64,000 nucleotides of DNA from Mobula birostris. Its lineage: Eukaryota. Both the position numbers and the translations under genes were made by a program. Shown here piece after piece: positions 5,544-43,494 of this stretch. Location of the stretch: NCBI RefSeq assembly GCF_030028105.1, contig NC_092383.1:86385921-86449920 (forward strand), in the 5' to 3' direction. How positions within the stretch are numbered: the stretch's first letter is position 1; the number at the start of each line of letters is the position of its first letter. The notes under the pieces were generated by a model. The model worked only from the letters and a program-made list of their open reading frames with translations, was not told the origin of the DNA and did no database searches.

Positions 5544-5600
5544 TCAAACATTCTGCACACATACAGTTGTCAACATCTTGTCAATATCATCTGCAGATAG
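5544..5600 (-). CDS. Probable terminal cytoplasmic exon of the Ig receptor (LSADDIDKMLTTVCVQNV*)
   Basis: AG acceptor at 5601-5602, about 100-nt intron after the TM exon, phase 0 matches the TM exon end. An alternative acceptor 10 nt further gives MILTRC*. The tail is short and Tyr-free either way. Confidence 0.5.
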   Translation of the reverse strand, partial: LSADDIDKMLTTVCVQNV

Positions 5601-5704
5601 CTTTGGATTGACCATTGGATAAGAAATAGTCAATGTGTTTAAATATCTTCCCTCAAATGATCAGTATATTTGAAAGCAAATTCCATTGACGTCCAGAAAC
5701 CTAC

Positions 5705-5795
5705 CTTAGTTTCCCTTGTGAACCATGAGACTGAAATAGTGCAGATCAGCAGCAGTGTGAAGAGCAGCCAACGACCAACCTTCCATATCATGAAA
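5705..5795 (-). CDS. Transmembrane exon of the Ig receptor (FMIWKVGRWLLFTLLLICTISVSWFTRETK)
   Basis: Polypyrimidine acceptor ttctgtatctcttcccctttgctcag, donor AAG|GTAGGT; 91 nt, phase 2 to phase 0; hydrophobic run with N-terminal Lys/Arg. Confidence 0.8.
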
Positions 5796-6214
5796 CTGAG
5801 CAAAGGGGAAGAGATACAGAACTGATGAGACAAAACGAGATGGCTCTGTGTTTGAAACATTTACCTTCTGTTTCCTCTGTAACCTTAGTGGAGTGGAGCT
5901 CGGTAGATAAGCACAGGCAGACGAGTTTAATTAGAAGAGTAAACTAGTGTTGACAGAACGATGAGTAGGAGAAAGGAGAAAAACCTGATCATCATCTGGA
6001 ACAAAACCACATTTTCTCGAGGCAGTGGCAACATCTTGGATTGCAGTCATTCATTGATACTATTATGATTGTTGGAATTACTGAGTATGCCCGCTAGAAA
6101 ATGAATCTCAGGGTTGTATAATAAATTTATTTTGAGCTTTGAAATCTTTTCTGCATTACATCTAGTTCAATAACATTTTTTTTTAGCAGAATACCAACTT
6201 CTCCTCTCGTGTCA

Positions 6215-6404
6215 TCACTGATTATTATTCTTCCATATTGTTCACTTTGCCCATTTGTATTCACTAACAATGTGCTCTGGCGGTTCTACATGTGGCACAA
6301 ATACTTTGTGTGTGAACGGTATATTGGTGCATAGTGACAATCGATTGTGACCACTCTTCCCCACAACTCCTCTTATTTATCTTCTGCCCATAAACCACAC
6401 AAAA
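6215..6404 (-). pseudogene. CD300/pIgR-type V exon remnant V1 (pseudo, 3'-truncated)
   Basis: Homologous to V3 (TIDCHYAPIYRSHTKYLC); two in-frame stops (TAA, TAG), compensating 1-nt indels, no second half or donor. Confidence 0.85.
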
Positions 6405-7489
6405 CTGAGGGAGAAATTCTTCAGAAAATTTACAGGTAAAATTAAATTTACACAAGTAGATTCAAGATTGTTTAATGTCATTTCTTGTATACAAATGTAA
6501 AGGAGAACAAAATCATTGTTCCTCTCGATCTGAAGCAGCACAAAAACAAAAAAAAATAAAGAAAGCAATAATAATAATAAAAGATGTTTTACTTAAAGCC
6601 TCTTTTGCACATTGGACATTTGTCGGACTTTGTTGTGTGTGGTTTGTCATGGATTCTATTGTGTTTCTTTGTTTTGTGCATGTGTGAAAGAAGATGAATC
6701 TCTAGGTCGTTTATGGTGTACATACTTTGATAATAAGTTTACATTGAATTTTGAACTTGGAAAGTGGCTAGTGGGATGACTGATGGAATTGAACTCAGGC
6801 AGTGTGAAATGATGAATTTTGGGAAATTGAACAAGGGCAAACCTTACGCAGTAGAGAACTAGGTGTGCAACTACACCGATACCTGAAAATGGTAAGACAG
6901 ATACCTGAAAGTGGCAACACAGGCAGACAAAGTGCTGAACAAGGAATATGACCAGCTTGCCTTCATATGATGGGGCATTAATACAGTTGTGATGGCATGT
7001 TAGAGCTATAAAGGACATTGTCACGATCTCAACTTGAATACTCTGTGTAGTTCCATAGGAAGAGTGTGATTAAATTAGAGAAGGTACAGAAAGCATTCAC
7101 AAAGATGCTGCTAGGACTGGAGGGTTTGGGTTATGGACAGGCTCGGACAGTTTGAAACTTGGATGTGCAAGTTCAACTATGTTTGAAATGCTCCACATTT
7201 GAATGGAGTAAGTGACAGATTATAACATTGCATTAAGGTAGTACAAGGGGAAACAGTAAGAGAATGCAGAATAAAGTGTTACAGTTACAGAGAAAGTGCC
7301 ATGCAGTAGACAATAAGCTGCAAGCCCAGTTAGATTATAAGATCAAACACCCATTTTATCATACTACGAGAGCATCCAATAGTTTTGTAACAGTGAGAAA
7401 GAAGCTGTCCTTGAAGCTTGTGGTACATGCTTTCAGACTCTTGTAATTTCTGCCCAATATCAGGGGAGAGGAAGAGAGTACGTCAGTGG

Positions 7490-10171
7490 CTAAAAGATGG
7501 CTGCTATTGAGAGCTGAATGTCCAAGGATCTACTGTGTATTGGAAAGATAGGTTGATAGGCAGAAGGGGTGGTGTGGCCCTGTGTATAAGAAATAATATT
7601 AAATCATTAGAAAGGGATGACAGAGGATTGGAAGGTGTAGGGTCTCTATGAGTTGAGTTAAGAAATGTCAAGGGTAAAAGGACCCTAATGGCAGTTGTGT
7701 ACAGACCTTCAAACTGCAGCTGGGATGTGGATTACAAACTTCAGCAGGAGATAAAAAAGGCATGTCATAAGGGCAATATCATGATAACCTTCAGGGATTT
7801 TTACATGAAAACGTCTGGGGAAAGCCAGGTCAGTACTTGACCTCAAGAGAGAGGATTTGTAGAATGTCTAAGGCATAGTTTTTTAAAACAGCTTGTTATT
7901 GAGCCCACTTGGGGATAGGTTGTGCTGGATTGGGTGTTGTGCAATGATCCGGAGGTGATAAAGAGAGCTAAAGGTTAAGGAACCCTTAGGGAACAGTGAT
8001 CACAATATGATCATTCACTTTGAAATTTGAGAAGAAGAAACTAAATTCAAATGTGTTGGTATTTCAGTGGAATAAAGGAAATTACAATGGCATGAGAGGG
8101 GAACTGGCCAAAGTTGACTGGAAAGGGACACTAGCAGGAAGGACAGCAGAGCAGCAATGATTGGAGTTTCTGCGAAAAATGAGGGAAGTGCAAGGCAGAT
8201 ATATTCCAAATAAGAAGAAATTTTCAAATGGAAGGATGATACTACCATGGCTGACAAGTGAAGTCAGAGCCAAAGTAAAAGCAAAAGAGAGGGCATACAA
8301 GGAAGCCAGAGCTAGTGGGAAGATAGAGAATTGGGAAGATTTGAAAGACTTACAGAAGGAAACTAAGAAGGTCATTAGGAAGGAAAAGATGAATTATGAG
8401 AATAAGCTGGTAACTAATATCAAAAAAGATACTAAAGGCTTTTTTAAGTATATAAAGGGTAAAAGGGAGTCGAGGGTAGATATAGGGCCAATAGGAAAAT
8501 GCCGTTGGAGATATTGTAATGATAGACACAGAGATGGCATATTTTGCAACAGTTTTCACAGTGGAAGACCTCTGCAGTATACCTGATTTTCAAGAGTGTC
8601 AGGGAAGTGAAGTATGTGCAGTGAAAATTATGACTGAGAAGGTGCTCAAGAAGCTTAATGGTTTGAATGTGGATAAATCTCCTGGACCTAATGGAATGTA
8701 CCCTTGGGTTCTGAAGGAAGTAGCTGGAGAGATTGTGGAGGCATTAGCAGTAATCTTTCAAGAATAAATATTTCTGGCATTGTACCAGATGACTGGAAAA
8801 TTGCAAATGTTATTCCGCTATTTAGGAAGGGTGGGAGGCAGCAGAAAGGAAACTGTAGGCCTGTTATCCTGACATCAGTGGTTGAGAAGTTTTTGGAATT
8901 GATTGTTAGGGATGAAATTACAGAGTACCTGGAGGCATATTGCAAGATAGGCCAAAGCTAGCAGAGTTTCCTGAAAGGAAAATCCTGCCTGACTAACCTA
9001 CTGCAATTTTTTGAAGAAATTACTAGCAGGGTAGGCAAAAGAGATGCAGTGGATGTGGTGCACTTGGATCTTCCGAAGGCCTTTGACAAGGTTCCACACA
9101 TGTGGCTATTTAGCAAGTTAAGAGCCCAAGGAATTACAGGGAAGTTACTAGCATGGGTGGAGTATTGGCTGATCGGTAGAAACAGAGAGTGGTAATAAAG
9201 GGATCCTATTCTGGCTGGCTGCCAGTTACCAGTGGAGTTGCACAGGGTTTGGTGTTGGGACTGCTGCTTTTTACAATGTACATCAATGATTTGGTCTATG
9301 GGATTAATGGATTTGTAGCTAAATTTGCTGATGATACAAAAATAGGTGGAGGAGCGGGTAGTGTTGAGGAAACAGAGAGCCTGCAAAGAGCCTTAGATAG
9401 TTTAGGGGAATGGGCAAAGAAGTGGCAAATGAAATACAATGTTGGAAAGTGTATGGTCATGCACTTTTGTGGAAAAAATAAATGGGCAGACTAGTATTTA
9501 GATGGGGAGATAATTCAAATTGCAGAGATGCAAAGGGACTTGGGAGTCCTTCTGCAGGATACTCTAAAGGTTAACCTTCAGGTTGAGTCAGTGATGATGA
9601 AGGCGAATGCAATATTGGCATTCATTTCTAGAGGTATAGAATACAAGAGCAGGGATGTGATGTTGAGGGATTATAAGAGAATGATTCCAGGAATGAAAAA
9701 GTTACTATATGGGAAACGTTTGGCAGCTCTTGGGCTGAATTCCCTGGAGTTCAGGAAAATAAGGGGGGATCTCATAGAAACATTCTGTATGTTAAAAGGC
9801 CTGAATGGATTCGAAATGGCAAAGTTATTTCCCATGGGAGGGGAGTCTAGGACAAGAGGGCGTGACTTCAGGATTGAAGGATGTCCATTTAGAACAGAAA
9901 TGCAGAGAAGTTACTTTAGTCAGAGAGTCGTAAATCTGTGGAATTTTTTGCCATGAGCAGCTGTGGAGACCAAGTCATTTTGTGTATTTAAGGCAGAGAT
10001 AGATAGGTTCTTGTTTAGCTAGGGTAATCAAGAGGTATGGGTAATAAAGGGTATGGGGAGAAGGCAGGCGAGCGGGGATGACTGGACGAATTGGATCAGC
10101 CCATGATTGAATGGCAGAGCAGACTCGGTGGGCCAAATGGCCTACTTGTGCTCCTTTATCCTATGGTCTTA
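7490..10171 (+). mobile_element. CR1 LINE ORF2 (endonuclease through RT) plus 3' UTR, multiply disrupted
   Basis: ORF pieces PWLTSEVRAKVK, KSPGPNGMYPWVLKE, KFADDTKIGG, QRVVNLWN; 3' tail ending ...cctatggtcttat. Confidence 0.92.
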
Positions 10172-10929
10172 TCGGTAATTGGGTCTTCAATTAGATTGGC
10201 TGCTTTACCATGTCAGTGAAGTGTATTAAAATCAATTAAAAATATAAATTATTACAAATATCCATAAAGTATAATTATGTATGTATGAACGTGTATAACA
10301 ATCAGGATGTGGGGAGAAGCTGAGGTAATATCTACAGATCCCTCTGCACTCACAATTGAAGGATCTAATAAAGGAAACACTGCCTCTGCTTAAAACCAGC
10401 TCTCCTACAAAAGTCAACTCCCTCCTAATTCCATACTGGTTTGGACATTGATTGTTGAGTTCTCACTGGTGTCACGTCAAAATCTTTTCCCCTCTGGACT
10501 GTGGAACATCTTCAACAGACCCAGTAGAAAGCCTGCAGTGAATGTATCAGGGCAAACAGTTTGACATCACATGAGCTCCTCCAAGCACACATTGTAGATG
10601 GAGATGTCTCCTGCTGTTACATAACCAGCACATAGAGAAATAACTTGAAATGTGATGTCCTCAGCCAGTAATTGAGCAGGAACTTTGCCTTGCTGTGACT
10701 TTCGCTGCTGTGGAACCAGTGGTAAAGAAGCTTTGCAAGTTCTTGGCCAGTACAGCTCAACTTATGTCATGGGATAGAGTTAGCCATGGAACTGTCAGAG
10801 TAAATGCTACAGGGAGCACCCTCTGAGTCATGACAAATGGAGGAACATGTTCTAATTTCCTCATCACAGACATAGCACAGCAGTGTGATGTAAACATGAC
10901 GCTATTTCCATTCTGATGAGCTGCAGATC

Positions 10930-11740: not shown

Positions 11741-12049
11741 ACAGTGTCACGATGTACGCTGGCAATGTTGGAACCCAATTGCACAGGAAATCCAGACTCC
11801 AATGTGGAGACGGAGACCAAAGTTTATTCATAGGAATTCCAACAGAATGTCAATGGCTGAGCGGCAACTGCAAGACTGAACGCTCTCAAATTGGACCCCG
11901 CTATTAGCGCTAATCAGGCATCCGCTTAAGTAATACAAGTAATATGGAATTCCTGAGCCTATCAAAATGATGGAACGCACACCATGATGGACTCTTTATT
12001 GTCACCAGATATTTTAACCACGTGAACCTTAAGTCAGTGCTCCCCAGAT

Positions 12050-14035
12050 TCCATCAGAACATGGACTTTGCAACGAGAGGGGAGAATGTGTTGGACCTTG
12101 TTTACACAAACATTCCCGACCCCACCTCAGCTACTCAGACCACGTCTCTGTTATGCTAATCCCAGCGTACAGACAGCACGTCAGGCGCGCCAGACCTGTT
12201 CAGAAGCAGGTGAAAACCTGGCCAACAGGAGCCATCTCTGCTCTTCAAGACTGCTTTGAGCACACTGACTGGCACATGTTCAGGGAGGCTGCAACTGACG
12301 GCGACTCTACCAGCTTAGAGGAGTACACGGCATCAGTGACTCAGCAAGTGCGTCGATGACGTCACTGTGGCCAAGACCATCACTACATGCGCTAACCAGA
12401 AGCCATGGATGACCACAGAGGTGCGTGCGCTGCTGAGGACCCGTGACTCCACCTTCAGAGCAGGCGACAGGGCAGCCCTAACAACAGCAAGGGCCAAACT
12501 GTCCCGGGCCATCAAAAAGGCAAAGCGTGCACACGCCCAGCGAATCCACAGCCACTTCCAGGATAGGGGCGGCACGTGGCACCTGTGGAAAGGCATTCAG
12601 AACATCACCAACTACAAGACAACACCACCTGCCTGTGCTGGTGATGCCTCCCTCCCAGATGCGTTGAATAACTTCTATGCTCGTTTTGAGGTGAAAAATG
12701 ACATGGCAGTGAGGAAGACCACTCCTCCTCCGAACAACCAGGTGCTGTGTCTTACCTTGGCTGATGTGAGGAGAACCCTGTGCAGGGTCAACCCATGGAA
12801 GGCTGCTGGACCAGACAATATTCCTGGCAAAGTGCTTAGAGTATGTGAAGACCAGCTAGCTGAGATTCTCACTGACATCTTCAACATCTCCGAGCAGCAC
12901 CGTCGTTCCTACGTGCTTCAAGGCTGCCACCATCGTCCCCGTGCCGAAGAAGTCTTCAGTGTCCTGCCTCAACAACTACCATCCCGTCACACTCACAACC
13001 ATCATCATGAAGTGTTTCGAGAGGCTCGTCATGGGGCACATCAAGACCCTGCTGCCCCCCTCACTGGTCCCCCTGCAGTTCATGTACCGTCCCAACCGTT
13101 CAACAGACGATCCTATTGCCATCACCCTCCACCTGGACAAAAAAGACACTTACGTTCGAATGCTGTTCATAGACTTCAGTTCAGCATTCAACACAATCAT
13201 TCCTCAGAAACTGATTGGAAAGCTGAGCCTACTGGGCCTGAACACCTCCCTCTGCAACTGGATCCTAGACTTCCTGACTGGGAGATCTCAGTCCGGATTG
13301 GAAGCAGCACCTCCAACACCATCACACTGAGCACGGGGGCCCCCCAGGGCTGTGTGCTCAGTCCACTGCTGTTCACTCTGCTGACCCACGACTGTGCTGC
13401 AACACACAACTCGAACCAAATCATCAAATTTGCCAATGACACGGCCGTGGTGGGTCTCATCAGCAAGAATTATGAGTCAGCTTACAGAGAGGAGGTGCAG
13501 CAGCTAACAGACTGGTGCAGAGCCAACAACCTGTCCCTGAATGTGAACAAAACAAAAGAGTTTGTTGTTGACTTCAGGCTTCAGGAGGACACGGAGCGAC
13601 CACTCTCTGCTGAACATGAATGACTCCTCCGTAGAGATCGGTAACAGCACCAAATTTCTTAGTGTTCACATGGCGGTGAATCTCACCTGGTCCCTCAACA
13701 CCAGCTCCAGAGCAAAGAAAGCCCAGCAGCGTCTCTACTTTCTGCGAAGGATGAGAAAAGTCCATCTCTCACCTCCCGTCCTCACCACAGTCTACAGAGG
13801 TTGTATTGAGAACATCCTGAACAGCTGCATCACTGCCTGGTTCGGAAATTGCACCATCTTGGATCGCAAGACCCTTCAGCGGATAGTGAGGTCAGCTGGG
13901 TAGATCATGGGGATCTCTCTTCCCACCATTACCGACATTTACACCTCACGCTGCATCCGTAAAGCAAACAGCATTATGAAGGACTCCATGCACCCTTCAT
14001 ACAAACTCTTCTCCCTCCTGCCATCGAGCTGCCAT
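12050..14035 (+). mobile_element. Rex1/Babar-clade LINE ORF2, frameshifted
   Basis: NQKPWM...[61 protein letters not shown] motifs across ORFs 12367-13903. Confidence 0.9.
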
Positions 14036-14768
14036 AGCAATCCATAGAAATGGATACATTAACAAAGGTTAAGAGACATTTTGACAGATGTGTGGATAGG
14101 AAAGGCTTAGAACAGGGCTTCACAAACTTTTTTATGCCATGGACCTTACAATACTTAATTCATCAACTTCAGTTTGTTTATTTATGTGTAATTAATCTGT
14201 AGATTTCATTCTCACTTTCATAAACTATTATGCATTATGTATACTGCAGTGCTTTGCATCTTGGTTTGGAGAAACATTGCCTCACTGGACGGTATACATG
14301 TATATAGTTAAATGACAATAAACTTACCTTGACTGGACTGGACTGGACTTGATCCCAGGTTGGGAGCCCCTGGCAGAGAAGGATATGGAATAAATAAAAT
14401 TAAATGTGCTGAACTTAGATGAACATCCTGGTTGGCTTGGACGAGTCAGGCTGAAGGGCCTGTTGTTCTAATATATATCAAAGACATTATGATTCTATAC
14501 ATGAGCTTCAACTGCTATGCTTAAATTTTTAAATAATTGGGGAAAAGAAATTTTTCTTTGATCTCAGGCTTGACGCATGTTCAAGAAAATCAGGAATACT
14601 CAGTTTCCAAGATATGAGTTTGTTGAAGTTAATCATGTCAAATATGATAAACACTAGTTGAAGAGAAACAGATTTCTCTCCCAACTGGCTCTACTTGGAA
14701 GCAGTAGCAGTAAAACCACCCGCAGCGAAAACCTTATACTTTACATCTGAGCTGGAGTAGTTTCTTAC

Positions 14769-14823
14769 CTTTGTGCGGTTGTCATCAATTCTGTCACAGT
14801 ATTTTCACAGAAATCAATTCTCC
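14769..14823 (-). CDS. Candidate 55-nt connector exon ((G)RIDFCENTVTELMTTAQ(S))
   Basis: Strong acceptor ttttattttattttcttttaacag and donor AAG|GTAAGA; open only as phase 1 to phase 2, which fits C2-to-TM joining. Confidence 0.55.
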
Positions 14824-14944
14824 CTGTTAAAAGAAAATAAAATAAAATTTCATCTGCTTTGTACTTGCAAGAACAAGAGAGCACAGTTATTAGACCAATA
14901 GGTACTTGAACATGGTGGACCAAAGGTGATCTATTACCTGATGC

Positions 14945-15270: not shown

Positions 15271-16544
15271 GTGCAGCCAATTACATTTACTGGCAATTTG
15301 GATACAGGGAGATAATCCAACAGGATAATGCAGGAGGTTTTCTCAATAAAAAAGCAAAGTCTTTTGTTTCTCACATCTCTTGATGTCTCTACCTCTGAGA
15401 AAAATAACTCAATCTTTCTTGAATACTGGTTCACCACATTCTGGGAGAAGAAATCTTTCCTAATCCCAGTCTTAAATGTCTCACCCTTCAGATAATTTCT
15501 AAGATTCCAAGCTTACTTACTTACTGTCCGTTACACCACTGGTGTTTAGGGCAGCAATGAAGGTGTCCTATCTCTGGCAGTGTTCGGGGCTTCCTTCATT
15601 GTGTCAGTAGGTTCCTCTCGGTTTTCACTGCTGTCAGTCATGCAAGTCCCAGGTAGAGACTGAGCAATACCGTCAAACTCTGATGGAGAGGAATTTTTCA
15701 TTTCTGTTTCCATGACAATTTTGTTGAACCAATCAGGCTTGTCAGTCCTGAGTGAACCCCCCGAACCTGGAGGATTGGGGGACCACTCTAAGTCTGGCCC
15801 CTACCCTCTGACCTGTTCGGCATGGGTGACCCGATGAACTGCCAAAGCATAAAGCCCTCACTCCAGCCAACGTAGCTCTCTGCGTCATTGAGGCATGCAA
15901 ACCTCCAAATCTAACGACAAATTTGTGGTTCTCTTGGAGGTAAGTCTCATTAGACTATCCTGTATTCCCTGGCATTTGAAGCATCCTACCTGCATCTGTA
16001 TCACCCTGCTAAAATATTGCTCATTTCTATGTGATCACCTCTCAGCCTACTGAACTCCATCAAATAAAAACCAATTACATTTGCTCTCTGATCTTGTGTC
16101 ACTTGTGGCATTCCAGAAATCAGTCTGCTGATCCTTTGCTTGCCTTCTTCCTTAACAAGAACATCTTTCATTGAACCAAATCTGCTGACAATGCTGGTGG
16201 CCCAAGAGTGAGGCTCAAGTCAGTGTTTGACTGATTTAAGCTTCAGGCCAGAAAGGAAAGATCGGGTATGGGCCAAATCGAGGCAGTGATTCCCGGGTAC
16301 AAGAGTGTATCAAAGCAGCAAGAACCCCTACCATCCAAGTCATGCTCTCTTCTTGCTGCTGTCAGAACGAAAGAGTTGCAGGGGGCTTAGATCCCATATC
16401 ACCAGGTTCTGGACCAGTTGTTATCTTCAACCTGTAGGCTCCTGAAACATCATGGATAAATTCACTCACCAACACTGAACTGATTCTGCAACCAATGGAC
16501 TCACTTTCAAGGATTCTACAGTTCATCTTCTCAGTATTTATTTA

Positions 16545-16950
16545 TCTATCTCCTTCACCTTTCCCCATTCCCCTTTCCCTCTCTCACCAATCTCCTAACT
16601 TGCCCATGACCTCCCCCTGGTGCTGCTCCACTTTCCCTGCTGCCCGTGGCCTTCTGTCCCCTCCTATCAGATTTCCCCTCCTCCAGCCCTTTATTGCTTT
16701 CTCCAATTGACTTTCCAGCTCTTTACTTCACCCCTCCCACTCTCTCAATTTCACCTTGTACTTCTCCATCTCCTCCCACTGACTTTCTTAGGTTGACTTC
16801 TAATCTCCTTTCCTTTCCAGTCCTGATGAAGGTCTCAGCCCGAAATGATGACTGATGACTCTTTCCAATAGATATTCCCTGGTCTTCTGAGTACCTCCAG
16901 CAATTTGTGTGTGGTGCTTTGCTTTCCAGCATCTGCAGATATTCTCTTGT
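16545..16950 (+). mobile_element. Penelope-like 3' end inserted in a Rex1-type tail (duplicate at 18785-19180)
   Basis: Pyrimidine-rich tract followed by cctgatgaaggtctcagcccgaaa...ctccagcaatttgtgtgt; related copies at about 32.7-33.0, 35.5-35.9, 42.3-42.6 and 46.1-46.5 kb; the family name is an inference. Confidence 0.55.
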
Positions 16951-17262
16951 TATTATTTATTATTTGTTTCTTTTGTATTTGCACAATTTGTCTTATTTTG
17001 CACATTGACTGACAATTTTTGAGTGTTTGTAGTTTTACATTGAGTCTGTTGTATTCATTTGTATCTACTGTGAATGCCTACAAGAAAATGGATCTCGGGG
17101 TAGTATATGGTGACAAAAACTTAATTTACTTTCAACTTTGAAGTGGTTTATCTTGGAAAGACTATCTTAATGAATGGCCAGAAATATTACCAGATGAGAT
17201 ACATTCACACCCAGCCAGCGAGAGCAGATCAGAGACAGGAGACCCTGTGCTGAGAGACTCAC

Positions 17263-17296
17263 ATTTGAACGGCTGTGCCGAAAAGCTTTTCATTCT
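17263..17296 (-). CDS. 34-nt connector exon, intact copy ((E)NEKLFGTAVQ(I))
   Basis: gtttcag acceptor, AAT|GTGAGT donor; phase 1 to phase 2; the AT end plus the first T of the TM exon gives Ile in frame. Confidence 0.6.
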
Positions 17297-17425
17297 CTGA
17301 AACGTGGTGACAACATACACTTCATGCTCCTGTGTGAAGTTCCAACAACACAATATCCAGCACACATCAGTCATTCAGTTGTACTCCATTGATCATCATA
17401 AAGATTCAAACCCTCCAGCACTTAC

Positions 17426-17557
17426 CCATGCTGTTGACTTCAATCACATTTCTGCAGGTGCTGACATTGTTGGAGATGGACATACTGACCACTTCACTGG
17501 ACTTCTCTCCATTAATATTTGAGGCTTTGCAATAATACAGATAATTTTTGTATTCAA
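17426..17557 (-). pseudogene. C2-type Ig exon, 3' half only (cut by the duplication breakpoint)
   Basis: LYYCKASNINGEKSSEVVSMSISNNVSTCRNVIEVNSM|GTAAGT; 5' half replaced by the start of unit 2. Confidence 0.85.
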
Positions 17558-19514
17558 GTACACTTTTTATGCAACAGGATAATGCAGGAGGTTTTCTCAA
17601 TGAAAAGGCAAGGTCTTTTGTTTCTTATATCTCTTGATCGCTCTGCCTCTGAGAAAAATAACTCAATCTTTCTTCAATACATGTTCACCACATTCTGGGA
17701 GAAGAAATCTTTCCTAATCCCAGTCTTATCTGTTTCACCCTTCAGATTATTTCTAAGATTCCAAGCTTTCTTACTTACTGTCCGTTACACCACTGGTGTT
17801 TCGGGCAGCAATGAAGGTCTCCTATCTCTGGCAGTGTTCGGCGCTTCCTTCATTGTGTCAGTAGATTCCTCTCAGTTTTCACTGCTTTCAGTCATGCAAG
17901 TCTCGGGTAGAGATGAGCAATACCGTCAAACTCTGATGGAGAAGGATTTTTCATTCCTGTTTCCATGACAATTTTGTTTAACCAGTCAGGCTTGTCAGTC
18001 CTGAGCGAATCCTCCGAACCTGTAGGATTGGTGGACCACTCTAAGTCTGGCCTCTACCCTTTGACCTGTTTGGCATGGGTGACCCGATGAACTGCCAAAG
18101 AATAACAGCCAACATAGCTCTCTGGGTCATTGAGGCATGCAAGCCTCCAAATTTGTGGTTCTCTTGGAGGTAGGACTCCACAGACCATCCTATATTCCCT
18201 GGCATTTGAAGCATCCTACCTGCATCAGTTCAGCACATATCACCCTACTAAAATATTGCTCAGTTCTATGTGATCACATCTCAACCTGCTGAACTCCATC
18301 AAATATAAACCCAATCAACCAAATCCCTGATCTTGTGTCACTTGTGGCATTCCAGAAATCAGTCTGGTGATCCTTCGCTTGCCTTCTTCCTTAACAAGAA
18401 CATCTTTCATCGGACCAAATCTGCTGACAATGCTGGTGGCCCAAGACTGAGGCTCGAGTCAATGTCTGATCGATTTAAGCTTCAGGCCAGAAAGGAAAGA
18501 TCGGGTATGGGCCAAATCGAGGCGGTGAGTCCTGGGCACAAGAGCGTGTCAAAACAGCAAGAGCCCCTACCATCCAAGCCATGCTCTCTTCTTGCTGCTG
18601 TCGGTACAAAGGAGTTGCAGGGGGCTTAGATCCCGTATCACCAGGTTCTGGACCAGTTAATATCTTCAACCTGTAGGCTCCTGAAACATCATGGATAAAT
18701 TCACTCACCAACACTGAACTGATTCTGCAACCAATGGACTCACTTTCAAGGATTCTACAGTTCATCTTCTCAGTATTTATTTGTTTATCTCCTTCACCTT
18801 TCCCCTTTCCCTCTCTCACCATTCTCCTAACCTGCCCATGACCTCCCCCTGGCGAGCCTCCACTTTCCCTGCTTTCCATGGCCTTCTGTCCCCTATCAGA
18901 TTTCCCCTCCTCCAGCCCTTTATCGCTTTCACCAATTGACTTTCCAGCTCTTTACTTCACCCCTCCCACTCTCTCAATTTCACCTTGTACTTCTCCATCT
19001 CCTCCCACCGACTTTCTTAGGTTGACTTCTAATCTCCTTTCCTTTCCAGTCCTGATGAAGGGTCTCAGCCCGAAACGATGACTGATGACTCTTTTCAATA
19101 GGTGTTCCCTGGCCTTCTGAGTACCTCCAGCAATTTGTGTGTAGTGCTTTGCTTTCCAGCATCTGCAGGTATTCGCTTGTTATTTATTTATTTATTTATT
19201 TATTTATTATTTGTTTCTTTTGTATTTGCACAATTTGTATTATTTTGCACATTGATTGTCTGACCATTTTTGATTGTGTGTAGTTTTACATTGAGTCTGT
19301 TGTATTCATTTGTATCTACTGCGAATGCCTGCAAGAAAATGGATCTCGGGGTAGTATATGGTGACAAAAACTTAATTTTCTTTCAACTTTGAAGTGATTT
19401 ATCTTGGAAGGACTATCTTAATGAATGGCCAGAAATATTACCAGATGAGATACATTCACACCCAGCCAGCGAGAGTCAGATCAGAGACAGGAGACCCTGT
19501 GCTGAGAGACTCAC

Positions 19515-19548
19515 ATTTAAACGGCTGTGCCGAAAAGCTTCTCATTCT
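19515..19548 (-). pseudogene. 34-nt connector exon copy carrying a stop codon (CAA to TAA)
   Basis: AG AAT GAG AAG CTT TTC GGC ACA GCC GTT TAA AT; splice sites intact; TAA at 19517-19519. Confidence 0.6.
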
Positions 19549-19677
19549 CTGAAACGTGGTGACAACATACACTTCATGCTCCTGTGTGAAGTTCCAACAA
19601 CACAATATCCAGCACACATCAGTCATTCAGTTGTACTCCATTGACCATCATAAAGAATCAAACCCTGCACCACTTAC

Positions 19678-19998
19678 CCATGCTGTTGACTTCAATCACA
19701 TTTCTGCAGGTGCTGACACTGTTGGAGATGGACACATTGACCATTTCACTGGACTTTGTTCCATTAACATTTGAGGCTTTGCAATAATAGAGATCTTTTT
19801 TGTATTTTAATGGTTGGCAATGTAGATCCAGTGTATTGTTATCGGAGATCTTTGAATCCGCAGATGGGGTCCTTTCGTACCATGAGTACTGAATGGGAAG
19901 GGATCCATGGACAGACTCACAGGACACTGACACGGAGTTCCCACAACTTGAGCCACTTGTTGGTGGAGAAAATTGAAGCAAAGGAACAGACACAGGTT
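19678..19998 (-). CDS. Intact C2-type Ig domain exon
   Basis: 321 nt, phase 1-1; ttttccacag acceptor, GTAAGT donor; EPVSVP..VSCES..GSLPIQYSWY..YYCKASN, FCRL/PECAM-like C2 pattern. Confidence 0.9.
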
Positions 19999-22400: not shown

Positions 22401-22690
22401 CATCAGATACTTGGAGATGCACATCAAACACTGGATCATTGCCAAAGGTTGTAATTCCACATCTGTAAGGTCCTGTATCATTAGAGACAAGATTCTCCAT
22501 AGTAACAGTAAATATTCCTAGGGATGTGTTATCTCTGATTGTCATTCTTCCATACTGCTCATTTGTCCCATTTGTATTCACTAACGATGTGCATTGGCGA
22601 CCCCACATGCAGCACAAATACTTTGTGTGTGAACGGTACATTGCTGCATAGTGACAATCGATTGTGACCGCTCTTCCCACAACTCCTCTT
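22401..22690 (-). pseudogene. V exon V2: open domain body but 5' end and acceptor lost
   Basis: GRAVTIDCHY...YLCCMWGRQC...DTGPYRC...VSD|GTAGGT; upstream of RRGVV there is an in-frame TGA and purine-rich non-homologous sequence with no polypyrimidine acceptor. Confidence 0.75.
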
Positions 22691-22802
22691 CTTCATCTCC
22701 TTCTACTTTAGGCCACGAACGTATCAATCACCTCTGATGTGGACCACTTTCTGGAAGTCCAAAATGCCGGCTTCTACAAAGAATGGATCTGTATGCTCCA
22801 TG

Positions 22803-24223
22803 ACTCTTTAGATGCTGGATTAGTTCCTGAGGATTGGAGGGTGGCATGTAACCCCACTTTTTAAAAAAGGAGTGAGAGAGAAACTGGGGAATTATAGAAT
22901 GGTAAGCCTGACATCGGTGGTGGGGAAAATGCTAGAGTCAGTTATCAAAGGTGTGATAACAGCACATTTGGAAAGCGGTGAAATCATCGGACAGAGTCAG
23001 CATGGATTTGTGAAAGGAAAATCTTGTCTGACGAATCTCAGAATTTTTTGAGGATGTAACTAGTAGAGTGGGTAGGGGATAACCAGTGGATGTGGTATAT
23101 TTGGATTTTCAAAAGGCTTTTGACAAGGTCCCACACAGGAGATTAGTGTGCAAACTTAAAGCATACGGTATTGGTGGTATGCTATTGATGTGGATAGAAA
23201 ATTGGTTGGCAGACAGGAAGCAAAGAGTGGGAATAAATGGGACCTTTTCAGAATGGCAAGCAGTGACTAGTGGGGTACCGCAAGGCTCAGTGCTGGGTCC
23301 CCAGTTGTTTACAATATATATAAATGACTTAGACAAGGGAATTAAATGCAGCATCTCCAAGTTTGCGGATGACACGAGGCTGGGCGGCAGTGTTAGCTGT
23401 GAGGAGCATGCTAAGAGGATGCAGGGTGACTTGGATAGGTTAGATGAGTGGGCAAATTCTTGGCAGATGCAATTTAATATAGATAAATGTGAGGTTATCC
23501 ACTTTGGTGGCAAGAACAGGAAAACAGATTATTATCTGAATGGTGCCCAATTAGGAAAAGGGGAGGTGCAACGAGACCTGGTATGCTGGCATTCATAGCA
23601 AGAGGATTCGAGTACAGGAGCAGGGAGGTACTACTGCAGTTGTACAAGGCCTTGGTGAGACCACACCTGGAGTATTGTGTGCAGTTTTGGTCCCCTAATC
23701 TGAGGAAGGACATTCTTGCATAGAGGAAGTACAAAGAAGGTTCACAAGATTGATTCCTGGGATGGCAGGATTTTCATATGATGAAAGACTGGATTGACTA
23801 GGCTTATACTCTCTGAAATTTAGAGGATTGAGGGGGAATCTTATTGAAACATATGAAGTTCTAAAGGTTTTGGACAGGCTAGATGTAGGAAGATTGTTCC
23901 CGACGTTGGGGAAGTCCAGAACGAGGGGTCACAGTTTGAGGATAAAGGGGAAGCCTTTTAGGACCAAGATGAGGGAAAACTTCTTCACACAGAGAGTGGT
24001 GAATCTGTGGAATTCTCTGCCACAGGAAACAGTTGAGGCCAGTTCATTGGCTATATCTAAGAGGGAGTTAGATATGGCTCTTGTGGCTAAAGGGATCGGG
24101 GGTATGGAGAGAAGGCAGGTACAGGGTTCTGAGTTGGATGATCAGCCATGATCATACTGAATGGTGGTGCAGGCTCGAAGGGCTGAATGGTCTACTCCTG
24201 CACCTATGTTTCTATGTTTCTAT
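22803..24223 (+). mobile_element. Young 5'-truncated CR1 with an internal deletion near 23580
   Basis: [28 protein letters not shown] motifs; (tttctatg)n tail; same subfamily as 58686-61546 and 62519-63978. Confidence 0.93.
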
Positions 24224-24631
24224 GACTGCTGGACTAAGTGTGTAAATGTAGGAGGGGACAATGTTGAAAAATAACTGTGCTAGGTTTTCTAAAATTGACT
24301 CCTTCTATCTTGGGCCACGAAATTATCAATCACCCCTCGTAATATCTGGATCCCTTTACAGTTTATGTACAGAGAGTTCTTGGGATACAAGTCCATTGCT
24401 CCCTGAAAGTAGCAACAGAACTGGATATAATGGTAATGAAAGCATTCAGCATGTTTGCCTTCTTCATTCTACATGTTGGAGACTGAAGCTGACAAGGCAC
24501 TTTGTAGCTTCATAAAACTTTTGTTTGGGCACATTTGCAACATACAGTAATTTGTAGTTCTGGTTCCAACACTCTAGAAAAGATGGAGGTTTTGGAGGAG
24601 AGTAAAGACTTTACCAGGTGAAGATAACACC

Positions 24632-26044: not shown

Positions 26045-26365
26045 CGTCAAATACGTGCAGATACACATCAAACACTGGAGTATTGCCAGATGTTGTAATT
26101 CCACATCTGAAAATCCCTGTATTTTGAGAGGCAAGATTCTCCATAGTAACAGTAAATGTTCCCTGGGATGTGTTATCTCTGATTGTCCTTCTTCCATGCT
26201 GCTCATTTTTCCCATTTGTATTCACTAACAATGTGCATTGGCGACCCCACAGGCGGCACAAATACTTTGTGTGTGAACGGTACATTGCTGCATAGTGACA
26301 ATCGATTGTGATCGCTCTTCCCACAACTCCTCTTATTTTATTTTCTGCCCATAAAGCACCTGAAA
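26045..26365 (-). CDS. Intact CD300/pIgR-type V exon V3
   Basis: 321 nt, phase 1-1; ctccctcag acceptor, GTAGGT donor; VSGALWAENKIRGVVGRAITIDCHY..KYLCRLWGRQC..NTGIFRC; four Cys. Confidence 0.9.
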
Positions 26366-26367
26366 CT

Positions 26368-27890: not shown

Positions 27891-29429
27891 TGTGCCATCA
27901 GGATCGTTGCTGTTATTTGTTAACCACTCTTATTGTCATCAATATTAATAATCTGGAATGAAACTGTAGGTGGCATGATTAATAAGTTATGGGTGAGACA
28001 GCAGTGTGGTGGACAGTGGCAAGAGTTGTGTAAGTTTACACGAGGATCTTGAAAATGAGCCGGTGTTCAGTCCCATTATTCTGTGCCAGCAAGCTGCCCC
28101 CTCCCCACCTGAGCCTGTATTGTCTGCTTGCATTTGACCTGTCTCCCTCTCTTCTCGGTCCTACTATCAGGTGGAAGGTGCAGGAGCCTTGGGCCCCACA
28201 CCACAGGGTTCGTCAACAGTTGTTGTCCTGCAGCTATCAGGCTCCTGGATTGGTTTCACTCGCCTCAGCACTGAACTGACTCCGCAGCTGTGGACTCACT
28301 TTCAGAGACTCTGCCTCTCATGTTCTATGTATTATTTGTTTACATAGTTTTATTATTTGCACGATTCATCATCGCTTGCACATTGATTTTTTGTCAGTCT
28401 TTGTTGTGTGTGGTTTTACATGGATTCTATTGTGTTACTTTGTTTTGTGGGCAAAGGTATGGTGGATAATCACAGTCTTTATCCCAGGGTGGGGGAGTTG
28501 AAAACTAGAGACCCTCGGCTTAAGGAGTGAGGGAAAATTCTTAGAGAGCCCGGAGCAGCCGTGTTTTACACACACAGCCGTGTGTGCATGGAAAAGGCTG
28601 TCAGAGGAAGTACTAGAGATGGTTACAAATACACTATTTAAAATACATTTGGACAAGTTCATATATAGGCAAGTTTTAGAAGGATACGAGACAAATGCAG
28701 TGAAATGGGAGAAGCTCAGGAAGACACTGTGGTCAGCACAGATGATTTGGGGTGAAACTCCTGCGTCCATAACCTATAACTCCCTGACTCTGCAGCATCC
28801 TCTCTAAACTGGAACATGCTTTTAAAAGGATAAATTCAGAATTCTATTTCATTGCATAGATGTGACAGCTCATGGGATCACAGCCTATCAGATTGCACTT
28901 CAATCTCAACAATCAAAGTTCAAAGTATACTTATTATCAAAGAATCTATACTATATACAACCTTGAGATTCACCTCCTTCCAGGCAATCACAAAAAAATA
29001 GAACATCCCAATATACAGAAAAAAGAGCAAATCAAAGTAAGCAAATAACATTTGGAGCTGAAATTCACAAAACTGAGGCCACAGCCAAGAAGCCAGTCAT
29101 CACTGTAGTCAATTCATGAGGCCATTAATTGCCAACCACAGCCTCAGTTCAGCGTAAAGACACGTAAACCTTCTGTGCAGCAAGCTGAACACCAGCCCAT
29201 CCCTCGCCTTGGACTGACATTCCTTTAGTGATTAAAAGGGAATTGAAGGTTTATTATCCTTGTTGTAATCATGAAATGCAGCAGCCTTGTTCATAGAAGG
29301 AATGGATTTCCTTCTCATGTCTCAAAGCGAGTGAGGTTTTTTATTTAACAAACAAAAACCCAATTTCAGCGGTTAGTAATTTACCTGGGATGCTCAGATA
29401 TTCAAAAGCTAGAGACGACCAAAGACAAT

Positions 29430-30410
29430 GAGACCATTAGACATAGGAGGAGAATTAGGCCATTTGGCCTATACAGTCTGCTCCACTATTCCATCAAGGC
29501 TGACTTATTATCCCACTCAATTCCATCCTTGGCATTTCTCCCCATAATCTTTTGATGCCTTTCCTAAACAAGAAACTATTAAGTACGCTTTAAATATACT
29601 CAATGTCTTGGCCTCAAAAGCCATGTATGGTATTGAATTCCATAGATTCAACACCCTCTGGCTACAGAAATTCCTCCTCATCTCTGTTCTAATGTACGGA
29701 GTCTGCACATCCTCCATGTGGAATGTATGGGGTCTCCCCGAGTGGTCCTGTTTCCTCCCACAGTCCAAAGACATACTCATTAGGATAACTGCTCTTTGCA
29801 GATTGCCCTGTGATTATGTTACAGTTAATTGGGTTTGTCGAGAGTTCGATCGGTGTTGTGACCCAAAGGGCTGGAAGGGCCTATTCTGTACTCTATCGGT
29901 AAATAAATAAAATAAAGGGATGCCCTTGCATTCTGAGGCTGATTTTTCAGGATGATTTCCCCATAAGGAAACCACTTTTGATCATATACCTCCAAGTACC
30001 CCAAAATCCTGTTCTTAATAATAGACTCCCACATCTTCACAACCACTAAAGTCAGGCTAACTGGTTGACAATTTCCTTCCTTTCGCCTCCCTCCTTTCTT
30101 AAAGAGTGTGGTGATACTTCCAATTTTCCAATCCTTTGAACATTCCAGTCTAATTATTCTTGAAAGATCACCACTAATGCCTTCATGATTTCTTTAAATA
30201 ACTCTTTCAGAAACTTGGGATGTAGTACATCTGGTCCAAATGACTCATCTACTTTCAGATCCCTCAGCTTCTCAAGCACGTTTTGCTTAGTAATAGCAAC
30301 AACACTCATCTCTGCCCCTGCCATTGCCAAATTTCTGTCATTCCCACTAATATTTGCAATATTATAAGTCCTTCCTTTTGCTTTTATGAGAATCAGAAGT
30401 CGATACCAGT
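29430..30410 (-). mobile_element. Decayed CR1 pieces with a V-SINE fragment (+) at about 29700-29910
   Basis: MRRNFCSQRVLNLWNS; FGPDVLHPKFLKE; V core gtggtcctgtttcctcccacagtccaaagac. Confidence 0.7.
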
Positions 30411-30686
30411 CTGGACTTTTCAATGTAAAGCCAGAAGTATTAATGGAATGCTCTCAATTTGTCGAGATGCGCAAGTCCAACTATGTTTGAGATGCTCCAT
30501 ATCTTCCAGGAGCAAGTGACAGACTTAACTGTTCACTGCACTTTAGTTCTACCCCATGGATGCTGCAATGTGCAGCTTCTACAAATGCAAAGAAATTCCT
30601 TACCCTCAGTAGAGGTATAAGAGCAGCAGTAACAGAGTAACAAAAAGAAATATTTAAATGTATCCTCCCTTGAAATTAGAACTTAC

Positions 30687-30885
30687 CGCTGCCATTGATT
30701 TCTGTCACGTAACTGCAGATATCTCTGTTGTTGAAGACTGTCGCAGTAACCATTGCACTGGATCTCGCTCCAAGCCGATTTGAGGCACTGCAGTAATATT
30801 GCTGGTGTGTGTGCTTGAAGGATTGACAATGCAGAGTCAGTTCATTGGTATCTGAGATCTTCGGATACCCAGATGAGGTTTGTAA
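30687..30885 (-). pseudogene. C2-type Ig exon, 3' half only
   Basis: SSGYPKISDTNELTLHCQSFKHTHQQYYCSASNRLGARSSAMVTATVFNNRDICSYVTEINGS|GTAAGT; 5' half missing next to a Tc1 remnant. Confidence 0.85.
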
Positions 30886-30904
30886 ATATCTAAGGCACTA
30901 CTAT

Positions 30905-31208
30905 CCTCCTGGGATTTTCACACACAACTGTCTCTAGAGTTTAGTGAGAATGGTACGAACAACATGAAAAAACATCCAGAGAGCAGCAACTCTGTGAACA
31001 AAAGTGCTTTATTAATGAAAGAGGTCAGAGGAGAATGGCCAGACATGTTCATGCTGACAGAAAGGTGACGGGAATTCAAATAACCGTGGGTTATGACAGC
31101 GGTGTGCTGAAGAGCATCTGAAGGTACAACACGTCAAACCTCGAAGTGGATGAGCCACAGAAGCAAGAGACCATGAACATCCACTCAGTGGCCACTCTGT
31201 TATGTTTA
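30905..31208 (+). mobile_element. Tc1-like DNA transposon remnant (right part)
   Basis: gtctctagagttt..gagaatgg..gaggtcagaggagaatggccagac..cactcagtggccact terminal-repeat-like end. Confidence 0.7.
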
Positions 31209-31423
31209 GGAGGTTTAAAGGCAGCAACTTGTGAGATATCTGTCACATGTTTGGAGGCTTTCAGGAGAGAATGAAATTGTAACTGGGTTCAGTGACCTGC
31301 CGTATAGAGGGAAACATTTGGTACTGATATTACTGCAGAGATAGTGAGGGATGGACAGTGTCTGGCAAAGATCATGAGACTTTTATTTTATGGAATGCAC
31401 AAATCAATCACTGAGAAACCTAC

Positions 31424-31744
31424 CATCATTTACTGTTAGTTCTAAATTAAATCTTGTATCGAGACCTGGTGTTGTAATTCCACAGCCGTACCATCCTGTA
31501 TCTCCAGAGTGAAGATCCTCCATAGTAACAGTAAATATTCTCCGTTCCGGGTTATCTGTGATTGACACTCGTCCACTCCGTCTGTGCTGCCCATTTGTTT
31601 CCACTAAAACTGAACAATGGACGGTCCATCCATGGCACCAATACTTTGTGTCTGAGCGGTACTTTTCTTCATAGTGACAATCGATTGTGATCGCTCTTCC
31701 CACAACTCCTCTTACAGATTTCTCTGCCCGCAATGCACCTGAAA
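31424..31744 (-). CDS. Intact CD300/pIgR/TREM-type V exon V4
   Basis: 321 nt, phase 1-1; canonical splice sites; CHYEEKYRSDTKYWCHGWTVHC...DLHSGDTGWYGC, the four-Cys signature. Confidence 0.93.
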
Positions 31745-32174
31745 CTGAGGGAGGCATTGTCAGATGTGAGGGAAAGGAACAATTTAATACAACAATTATT
31801 TTTCAACATGACGGTAAAAACAGGTGCAGGTCATGTACGGCATGTGGTCCATGACAACACAGCCAATGATTTTGGTGTGAAGTGCAGTCAGTGCTGTTAC
31901 TGTGTCAGCCGTGTCAGTGATCTCTCTTCCCTGTGTCGGTACATTGTGGGTTCACTTCCCACTCCAGAATCCTGAGCAGAAACCCAGGGCTGATCTTCCA
32001 GTGCACTGCTGGGGGAGAGCCGTAGTGTAGCCAGAGGGTGTTGACTCTATGGAATTCAATACCATACACAGCTTTTGAGGCCATGAAAGTGTTCAACTTT
32101 CAGTTGCTTCAGAATATGTCAGCCTTTGAAATGTCCACAGAGCTTCCAGCTATTTCATAAGATGCTCCCAATTT

Positions 32175-32194
32175 TGTGTGTGTGTGTGTGTGTG
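32175..32194. repeat. (TG)10 microsatellite
   Basis: Direct read. Confidence 0.95.
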
Positions 32195-33090
32195 CGCCTG
32201 TGTGTGTTCAGACAAGGTTCTGAAGCAATTTGTAAATATTGTACCTATCAAGTATTTCTATGTGTAGTTAGAAGGTGGCGCAACAGTGGTCATTAGTGCT
32301 TCTGTGTCTAGAAACTCAGGTGAGATTTCAATAACTGTTGAGATACTTTGAGTATGAAAATCCAATTTATTATTTCTGGTATTTAAAAAACAAGTATCAA
32401 TAATAATAATGATGAACTGTCAGATTGTAAAGATCCCATCTAGATTGGAAAGACTTTTAGGGAGAGAAATTTCTTATCCCTACCACCCTGGTTTACCTTT
32501 GACTCCAGATCTAGTAACGTTCTATGTTAACTGCACCACTGAAGTGGCCCAGGAAGGACTCTGATTTCAAGACAATAACGTCAAATGTCGCAGTGATCCC
32601 TGCAGAGAGAGAACAGATCCCAGCAATGGTAGATCTGATGTTCTCGCTTAACAGGTTGCAGTAGATTTCTCCAGCTGGACATATTCTCCCCAAACCTGGC
32701 TCTACACAATTCTTCTTTTCTCCTTATCTGCTTCCACCTCTCACCCACCTCCAAACACCATCCCTTTTCCACCCCATTCCATTTGCCTGTTGTGCTTCAC
32801 TATTCCTCAGCCCCGACTAACTTGAGGACCCAGTTTCACACTTCCCCCTCTCCTATTTAACCCTCTCCCGCTCTACTCACACATGAGGCAGGGTCTCGAC
32901 CCGAACCATTGACATTTCCTCTGCCCCTGACAGAAGCTGCTTGACCCATTGAGTTTCTCCATGAGTGAACTCTGAGCTCCAGTTTCCGACAGCTTTAGTG
33001 TCTACGGGTATCAAGCATTCTTGTGAAAACGTTGTACGACCCCCAATCCAACACTGATTATGCAGTTGTCCAGTGCTGTCTGTAACTCAC

Positions 33091-33130
33091 CAGGTAGGAA
33101 ACCAGTCAGAAGGATCAACGTCCACAGCAT
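33091..33130 (-). CDS. Signal-peptide exon (MLWTLILLTGFLP) for V4
   Basis: ATG plus 13 codons plus 1 nt, G|GTGAGT donor; joins V4 to give MLWTLILLTGFLPVSGA. Confidence 0.88.
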
Positions 33131-42094: not shown

Positions 42095-42131
42095 TGGGTA
42101 GGAAACTAATCAGAAGAATCGAAATCCACAT
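42095..42131 (-). CDS. Signal-peptide exon (MWISILLISFLP), paired with pseudo V5
   Basis: 37 nt, ATG start, A|GTGAGT donor; homologous to 33091-33130. Confidence 0.75.
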
Positions 42132-43490: not shown

Positions 43491-43494
43491 TAGT

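Follow-up and report, generated by a model that had tools for sequence, protein, structure and literature searches.

The giant manta ray (Mobula birostris) carries one gene of the modular domain immune-type receptor (MDIR) family of cartilaginous fish, of the MDIR5 type, on the minus strand of the analysed 64,000-nt stretch of contig NC_092383.1 (the window), between positions 33130 and 5403. Gene structure and family assignment are given a probability of about 75%. Within a known gene family, the locus is an ordinary member that has partly decayed, and RefSeq already contains a prediction of it. Isoform X2 (P0204, 305 aa), listed as XP_072134930.1/931.1, is reproduced without a single difference by joining seven exons of the window (33130-33091, 31744-31424, 19998-19678, 14823-14769, 14369-14328, 5795-5705 and 5450-5403), all with AG/GT borders. 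In this order, they encode the leader, the first V domain, the second C2 domain, a stalk with a cysteine, a short Ser/Pro stalk, the transmembrane (TM) segment and 15 aa of the tail. All exons named here lie on the minus strand. The coding part of the leader exon (33091-33130) specifies MLWTLILLTGFLP of a split signal peptide, equals residues 1-13 of XP_072134930.1 and is followed by a GT donor. Isoform X1, XP_072134929.1 (P0225), is also rebuilt exactly from window exons with AG/GT borders. It runs from the remnant of a C2 exon (C2a, ATG at 30753) through the second V exon V3 and has no signal peptide, which suggests that some transcripts carry a damaged exon and are unproductive. The RefSeq models at this locus are automatic predictions. 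They name the protein "uncharacterized protein" or "CMRF-35-like molecule 4". The two accessions for X2 encode an identical protein, usually an indication of two modelled transcript variants.

A sequence-only reading of the window had assembled an immune receptor from six segments. The segments are indeed present on the minus strand, their internal borders all carry AG on the acceptor and GT on the donor side, and together they join into 864 nt (287 aa plus stop); addition of V3 (26045-26365) gives 394 aa. Four of the six (33091-33130, 31424-31744, 19678-19998 and 5705-5795) match the RefSeq exons exactly, but the proposed connector (17263-17296) and tail (5544-5600) occur in neither annotated isoform. 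The exact proteins of 287 or 394 aa are not supported, since the model has an incorrect connector and tail and omits the conserved Cys stalk exon. The gene had further been described as invisible to the open reading frame track. This holds in the sense of a spliced vertebrate gene, nothing more, and RefSeq already predicts it.

The assignment to the MDIR family, also proposed from the sequence, is borne out by comparison with the skate proteins. XP_072134930.1 and MDIR5 of the clearnose skate (ABC86800.1, Raja/Rostroraja eglanteria) are 55% identical over 292 aligned positions (E 2e-105), including stalk, TM segment and tail. Identity to skate MDIR2 (ABC86796.1) is 51% over 283 positions (E 3e-91). 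The nearest relatives in the database are batoid and shark proteins, skate MDIR5 and MDIR2 included. Manta protein and MDIR5 have in common the Ig-domain subfamilies, the Cys stalk, the TM segment (WKVGRWLLF) and a short K-[KR]-DES-[DE]-P tail; the stalk Cys, the WKVGRW motif and a KKRDESEP-like tail align, and the type I layout is collinear with the named MDIR form. The domain order of skate MDIR5, V-C2-V-C2, is followed by the exon remnants in the window. Unlike MDIR5, manta X2 has two Ig domains only, the first V and the last C2, the middle exons being broken or skipped, and it possesses an additional 14-aa stalk exon. The 2006 description of the MDIR family came from the clearnose skate (Cannon et al. 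2006, Immunogenetics 58:362, ref. 35 of PMC3031540); to our knowledge, the family has been little studied since. That description reportedly distinguished four Ig-domain subfamilies and receptors with one to six domains. The relatives found here carry from one to at least five V domains. At least nine distinct M. birostris relatives are located on the same 99.8-Mb chromosome, several with consecutive accessions, and form a large multigene family. One paralogue, XP_072134926.1 (P0161, "polymeric immunoglobulin receptor-like isoform X1", 505 aa), shares leader, stalk exon 1 and TM segment at 100% identity and has a near-identical tail. V4, C2a and V2 of the window match its domains at 93-99% identity; it is located on the same chromosome and has a neighbouring accession number. 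It is a separate 21.6-kb gene with an intact L-V-C2-V-C2-stalk-TM-tail layout, all four Ig exons intact, and without the second stalk exon.

The combination of a four-Cys V domain of the CD300/pIgR type with C2 domains had been recognized correctly. The V4 domain superposes on CD300lf with a TM-score of 0.91 and an rmsd of 2.2 A at 38% identity, and all four cysteines align with domains D1, D4 and D5 of pIgR (E 8e-49 summed over domains). The CD300/CMRF35 molecules (CD300lf, PDB 6e47, 1zox) share the V fold and the extra disulfide with the manta V domain, and some members resemble the manta protein in a short tail and a charged TM residue. CD300 proteins consist of a single V, their only Ig domain, on a mucin-like stalk, whereas in the manta protein an FCRL-type C2 domain comes after the V domain, and TM segment and tail are unrelated to CD300. 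The ectodomain of pIgR is all V-type in the solved structures, and pIgR has a long cytoplasmic tail. The manta protein alternates V with C2, its second domain being FCRL-type, and ends in a tail of 20 aa. RefSeq nevertheless labels many members of its family "pIgR-like". Among FCRL4/5, the manta C2 matches the domains of FCRL5 (E 3e-33 over six stretches). FCRLs are not known to have a V domain of the pIgR/CD300 type and signal via ITIM or ITAM-like tails.

Seven Ig exons, intact or damaged, line the locus. V4 (31424-31744), used in X2, is an intact four-Cys V exon identical to residues 14-120 of XP_072134930.1 (Pfam V-set, E 3e-13) and of the first-V type (D1). Next follows C2a (30687-30888), the remnant of a first-C2 exon (D2), whose 5' half and native acceptor are gone and whose donor is intact. 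DNA homology of C2a to C2b and to a further C2 at 43.7 kb ends near 30890, with stops and frameshifts upstream. Cryptic in-frame acceptors are present within the remnant, all with poor pyrimidine tracts. V3 (26045-26365), used in X1, is an intact exon of the second-V type (D3) with an open frame, AG/GT borders and four Cys. V2 (22402-22689) is a dead duplicate of the same type. Its acceptor is lost, ACG replacing CAG in the alignment with V3, and its 5' end contains a 1-nt deletion and stops. V2 matches the second V domain of XP_072134926.1 at 99%. The intron between V3 and V2 harbors a retroelement fragment on the plus strand (22808-24224) with a reverse-transcriptase ORF at 23086-23598 (Pfam RVT_1, E 2e-23) and 91-92% identity to an element at 57.9-64 kb. 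C2b (19678-19998) is the intact membrane-proximal C2 exon (D4), identical to residues 121-227 of XP_072134930.1 and present in both annotated isoforms. A 2.2-kb tandem duplication (15315-19806; 15315-17554 equals 17569-19806 at 91% in self-BLAST and alignment) copied the 3' part of C2b and a mini-exon behind it. The resulting C2c (17427-17558) is a 3' fragment of a D4-type exon without acceptor. Finally, a pseudo-V fragment with stops (6208-6396) is situated in the intron between stalk and TM exon.

Domain trees with batoid relatives placed V4 in D1 (clade support 98), C2a in D2 (99), V3 and V2 in D3 (100) and C2b and C2c in D4 (99). Along the DNA, the clades appear in the canonical order of first V, first C2, second V and second C2. 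The window exons therefore belong to a single MDIR5-type gene of four domains that has suffered internal damage and duplication. The earlier proposal of a receptor pieced together from several ancestral tandem units is contradicted by these trees.

The extent of the damage raises the alternative of a decaying, largely unproductive copy. Most transcripts would then carry damaged exons, as X1 does, and be degraded or leaderless, X2 would mostly reflect homology-guided prediction, and the function would rest with intact neighbours, XP_072134926.1 among them. Three of the seven Ig exons are broken, a retroelement has entered an intron, X1 starts within the C2 remnant, two dead 5' gene copies are located upstream of the locus within the window, and intact paralogues with domains of 93-99% identity exist. 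Against this stand the X2 exons, every one of them open and with sound splice sites, which have kept the conserved cysteines, the invariant TM arginine and the conserved tail, and the X2 protein appears under two accessions. A largely unproductive copy is considered improbable.

The connector between C2b and the membrane is encoded by two stalk exons. Stalk exon 1 (14769-14823) codes for GRIDFCENTVTELMTTAQ with a membrane-proximal Cys, is required to rebuild both X2 and X1 and shows conservation across the family, skate MDIR5 included. Its cysteine may link two chains, by analogy. Stalk exon 2 (14328-14369, 42 nt) codes for GSQPGIKSSPVQS. It is symmetrical and missing from XP_072134926.1, and thus optional across the family. 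The 34-nt connector of the sequence-only reading (17263-17296) is frame-compatible and has good splice signals, but neither annotation nor homologues support it. A proximal twin (19515-19548) has an identical acceptor and donor and an in-frame TAA that would end the protein at 237 aa. The intron between C2b and the TM exon holds 631 frame-compatible open AG..GT segments, 17263-17296 among them, so that a match in phase is cheap. A strict splice filter retained 17263-17296 as one of only two passing segments in the intron and rejected the real stalk exon (donor GTAAGA). Splice signals alone hence do not decide the connector.

The TM exon (5705-5795, FMIWKVGRWLLFTLLLICTISVSWFTRETK) matches XP_072134930.1, XP_072134929.1 and XP_072134926.1 at 100%. 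The predicted TM helix comprises residues 262-287 and includes Lys265 and Arg268; an equivalent of Arg268 is found in 47 of 47 TM segments of the family. The real last coding exon (5403-5450) encodes KPDESDPPRVVYKVK with a stop at 5405-5403, and this tail is likewise conserved, in MDIR5 as in the rest of the family. An AATAAA is found at 5071, approximately 330 nt downstream. Relatives throughout the family show the stalk Cys, the WKVGRW motif and a K[KR]DES tail, the manta version of the latter being KPDESDP. The tail exon of the earlier model (5544-5600, LSADDIDKMLTTVCVQNV plus stop) is unsupported and has a weak, purine-rich acceptor. Two other candidates were rejected. A second TM or tail exon was sought in the repeats at 0.7-1.0 kb and 37 kb (weak tblastn match at 37161-37114), where the aligned sequence proved to be a dispersed repeat with no relation to the tail exon. 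Some predicted paralogues (P0041, P0158, P0186) have longer cytoplasmic tails, and these matched dispersed repeats at several places in the window rather than exons of the gene.

The 287-aa or 394-aa model could still represent a real, perhaps alternative, transcript (C2 to 17296-17263, TM exon, 5600-5544). In its favour, every junction has AG/GT borders with matching phase, the pyrimidine tract of the 34-nt exon is fair, its donor reads GTGAGT and the strict filter lets it through, and V-V-C2 layouts as in the 394-aa version exist in predicted relatives (P0018, P0016). Nevertheless, the connector and tail peptides occur in none of 233 relatives, and both the Cys stalk exon and the tail, conserved between mantas and skates, are missing from the model. 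The nearer twin with identical signals and TAA would need to be skipped. Connector and twin differ at 2 of 34 bases, compared to about 9% over the whole duplication, giving no sign of constraint on the mini-exon. The tail acceptor is purine-rich, and the proteins retrieved by database search included neither the 287-aa nor the 394-aa form, and no isoform joining leader, V4, V3 and C2b. Such a transcript is very improbable. A gene yielding mainly a secreted two-domain form of 237 aa (C2 to 19548-19515, TAA; L-V-C2-ENEKLFGTAV) is hardly credible: the C2 donor and the mini-exon downstream of it are only 129 nt apart, and the mini-exon has the good splice signals of its twin, and soluble receptors with CD300-like V domains are known in fish, e.g. 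carp SITR (PMC3031540), but no annotated or homologous protein among 233 relatives has such an end, none was among the proteins retrieved for the locus, and transcripts with a stop so far ahead of later junctions would normally be degraded.

The membrane-bound MDIR5-type product of the X2 exons would be a type I receptor at the cell surface, with a CD300/pIgR-like V domain that would bind the ligand. The tail after the TM helix comprises 20 aa (TRETKKPDESDPPRVVYKVK). Read directly, its single Tyr (VVYKVK) fits neither the ITIM nor the ITSM pattern. Like adaptor-coupled receptors, the protein has basic residues in its predicted TM helix and a short tail devoid of ITIM and ITAM. The invariant Arg at the outer end of the helix, together with the 20-aa motif-less tail, would direct signalling through an adaptor with an acidic TM residue and an ITAM. 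By analogy to FcR-gamma-coupled receptors, such signalling is tentatively proposed, at slightly less than even odds. Against this proposal, the 2006 description reportedly found no recognised signalling motifs in MDIR5.

At the locus, the first C2 has lost its 5' half, the second V was duplicated with one copy now dead, and the second C2 was duplicated in part; the annotated productive X2 mRNA skips the damaged middle exons. The locus may also illustrate a natural change in domain number. In this scenario, a four-domain MDIR5-type gene whose second Ig exon and one copy of the third fell to deletion and mutation would survive as a two-domain receptor purely by exon skipping. Intact V3 would make a V-V-C2 variant possible, and the two 34-nt copies with their strong splice signals would serve as poison exons tuning output. 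This scenario is possible and rather unlikely.

An automatically named manta protein and many "pIgR-like" and "FCRL5-like" neighbours are now tied to the MDIR family, and a corrected exon map is available for a manta member. Beyond family link and exon map, the gene is not exceptional within this known receptor cluster, which evolves fast. Conservation of stalk Cys, TM Arg and tail between skates and mantas makes the adaptor coupling directly testable. If the change in domain number is true, the number of MDIR domains, one to six, would vary because phase-1 exons decay and are skipped within genes, not because of shuffling between genes.

The gene proposed by the sequence-only reading is real and its family was rightly recognised; the protein proposed for it contains two wrong exons, and its evolutionary story needs correction. 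The locus (33130-5403, minus strand) encodes a 305-aa protein of Mobula birostris, annotated as 'uncharacterized protein isoform X2' (P0204, XP_072134930.1/931.1). P0204 is rebuilt exactly from seven window exons, all with AG/GT borders (33130-33091, 31744-31424, 19998-19678, 14823-14769, 14369-14328, 5795-5705 and 5450-5403). A second protein, 'CMRF-35-like molecule 4 isoform X1' (P0225, XP_072134929.1, 314 aa), is also rebuilt exactly, from 30753-30687, the V exon V3 (26365-26045) and the five 3′ exons of P0204. These exact matches show that the window comes from the giant manta ray and that the gene is already auto-annotated. The RefSeq proteins for the locus are predicted models. Isoform X1 starts within a C2 remnant and has no leader, which would suit a mostly unproductive locus; this reading is improbable.

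The six segments originally joined are all on the minus strand, with AG before and GT after every internal border, and yield 864 nt, or 287 aa plus stop (394 aa with 26045-26365). Four of the six agree with P0204, and the two proteins are identical over residues 1-227 and the transmembrane exon. They differ between these parts and after them: the connector 17263-17296 and the tail 5544-5600 are wrong. The real connector is a 55-nt stalk exon coding GRIDFCENTVTELMTTAQ, followed by a 42-nt stalk exon coding GSQPGIKSSPVQS, and the real last coding exon (5450-5403) codes KPDESDPPRVVYKVK. A Cys-bearing stalk, a transmembrane segment and a K-[KR]-DES-[DE]-P tail recur in family members of rays, skates and sharks, and the same three parts of P0204 align with clearnose-skate MDIR5.

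The rejected connector is one of only two segments passing a strict splice-signal filter. The genuine stalk exon fails this filter, so splice signals alone are not decisive. Phase matches are cheap: 631 open AG..GT segments with a suitable phase lie in the C2b-to-transmembrane intron. The 34-nt connector sits within a 2.2-kb tandem duplication (15315-17554 = 17569-19806, 91% identity). With 2 mismatches in 34 bases, its two copies are no more alike than the duplicated halves overall. The rejected tail exon has a purine-rich acceptor. Ten short peptides from this connector (ENEKLFGTAVQ) and tail (LSADDIDKMLTTVCVQNV) were found in the right context in none of the 233 fetched relatives, and the exact 287-aa protein is very unlikely to be real. 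The connector's twin lies 129 nt behind the C2b donor, with identical splice signals and an in-frame TAA; a secreted 237-aa form made via this TAA-bearing mini-exon is likewise very unlikely.

The end of the last coding exon (5403-5412) reads TATAAG followed by GTAAAGTGA, with a GT directly after the Lys codon, two codons ahead of the stop. In the paralogues P0041 and P0005, whose tails run on past '...VHK', this GT may be usable as a donor, and some family members may thus splice around the stop. Some predicted paralogues, e.g. M. hypostoma P0041 and P0158 ('...EKETRHEHFQSQYRGLKGEQGMEIKAGC') and M. birostris P0186, have C-terminal extensions that match dispersed repeats with many copies in the window (50216-50299, 39540-39602, 55110-55202, 55529-55708, 50614-50801 and about ten further sites). 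Such predicted tails probably represent exons derived from repeats, or annotation artefacts, rather than signalling tails.

Assignment to the MDIR family (modular domain immune-type receptors) is supported by sequence comparison. P0204 shares 55% identity with skate MDIR5 (ABC86800.1) over 292 aligned positions (E 2e-105), spanning V, C2, stalk, transmembrane segment and tail, and 51% with MDIR2 (ABC86796.1) over 283 positions. When 1.8 billion representative proteins were searched with the V exon V4 by a profile-free method, 2526 relatives came back, the closest being ray, skate and shark proteins. Pfam classes V4 as a V-set domain (E 3e-13). The expected likeness to CD300/PIGR-like proteins was confirmed: among solved structures V4 is closest to pIgR (E 8e-49, summed over domains), CD300/CMRF35 proteins (about 1e-19) and NKp44, and each of its four Cys aligns with one of the four in pIgR D1, D4 and D5. 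C2b matches FCRL5 (E 3e-33, six stretches) and FCRL4. An AlphaFold model of the annotated 305-aa protein has a mean pLDDT of 76 (more than 90 over most of the V domain) and a helix at 262-287. The modelled V domain superimposes on CD300lf (TM 0.91, rmsd 2.2 A) and pIgR D1 (TM 0.81). The window gene is one more member of the MDIR family, already in RefSeq; the family has reportedly been known since 2006. Its primary paper, Cannon et al. 2006, is reference 35 of PMC3031540.

Searching the window in six frames with the domains of the originally proposed protein revealed many further related pieces on the same minus strand: the intact V exons V4 (31.7 kb) and V3 (26.3 kb), V2 (22.6 kb), a V fragment with stops (6.3 kb), the intact C2b (19.9 kb) and the C2 pieces C2a (30.8 kb) and C2c (17.5 kb). 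Upstream of the live gene (40492-46586, minus strand) are remnants of two more 5′ gene copies. They comprise leader-like exons (46586-46551 at 46.57 kb, 42131-42096 at 42.11 kb), a first-type V interrupted by a stop and a frameshift (45493-45193, 45.3 kb), 61 codons from the 5′ end of a first-type C2 (43733-43551, 43.64 kb) and a V fragment (40602-40492, 40.55 kb). Trees were built from the V and C2 domains of 18 multi-domain relatives. They group V4 with the first (membrane-distal) V domains that stingray and manta genes carry (support 98), and they place V3 and V2 in the second-V clade (100), C2a and the 43.64-kb C2 in the first-C2 clade (99), and C2b and C2c in the membrane-proximal C2 clade (99). 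Along the DNA, the first V is followed by the first C2, two copies of the second V, the second C2 (one and a fragment), the stalk, the transmembrane segment and the tail. MDIR5 and the intact manta paralogue P0161 (XP_072134926.1, 505 aa, a separate 21.6-kb gene) have the same order. Domain trees and exon order point to one four-domain MDIR5-type gene, not to the suggested assembly from several ancestral tandem units; the simplest history is such a gene followed by internal duplications and exon decay.

Homology of C2a with other C2 exons ends near 30890, with stops and frameshifts upstream. V2 carries ACG in place of V3's CAG acceptor; it also contains stops and has lost 1 nt. Just upstream of V2, in the V3-V2 intron, lies a retroelement fragment (22808-24224) that includes a reverse-transcriptase ORF. 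The fragment shares 91-92% identity with parts of an LTR element at the window end (57980-63979), whose own parts are repeated in both orientations at 95-96% identity (58-64 kb). The productive mRNA would skip the broken middle and join the first V directly onto the last C2. A GC-rich stretch of the stalk-to-transmembrane intron (52% vs about 42%) holds, antisense to the gene, a 418-aa open frame (12367-13623, plus strand) that encodes part of a reverse-transcriptase domain (Pfam RVT_1, E 4e-10) and is probably a retroelement relic. The segments 43-986 and 36387-37320 are copies of a dispersed repeat about 0.95 kb long (79% identity). The segment 37161-37114, within this repeat region, was rejected as a relative of the 5544-5600 exon, the weak protein-level likeness being due to chance.

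The annotated protein consists of a split signal peptide, a four-Cys V, a C2 bearing three N-glycosylation sequons, a stalk whose one unpaired Cys (Cys233) may serve to form a dimer, a predicted transmembrane helix and a tail of 20 aa. Analogies for the ligand are lipids, to which CD300-like V domains bind, and polymeric Ig, to which pIgR binds. In ungapped BLAST, Arg268, near the outer helix end, is present in 47 of 47 family transmembrane segments, and Lys265 in 19. The single tail Tyr (VVYKVK) matches no ITIM or ITSM pattern. FcR-gamma-coupled receptors (FcalphaRI, NKp46, LILRA) combine an Arg near the outer leaflet with a short tail without a motif. The invariant Arg and the short, motif-less tail favour adaptor-coupled activating signalling, by which this receptor would, tentatively, act.
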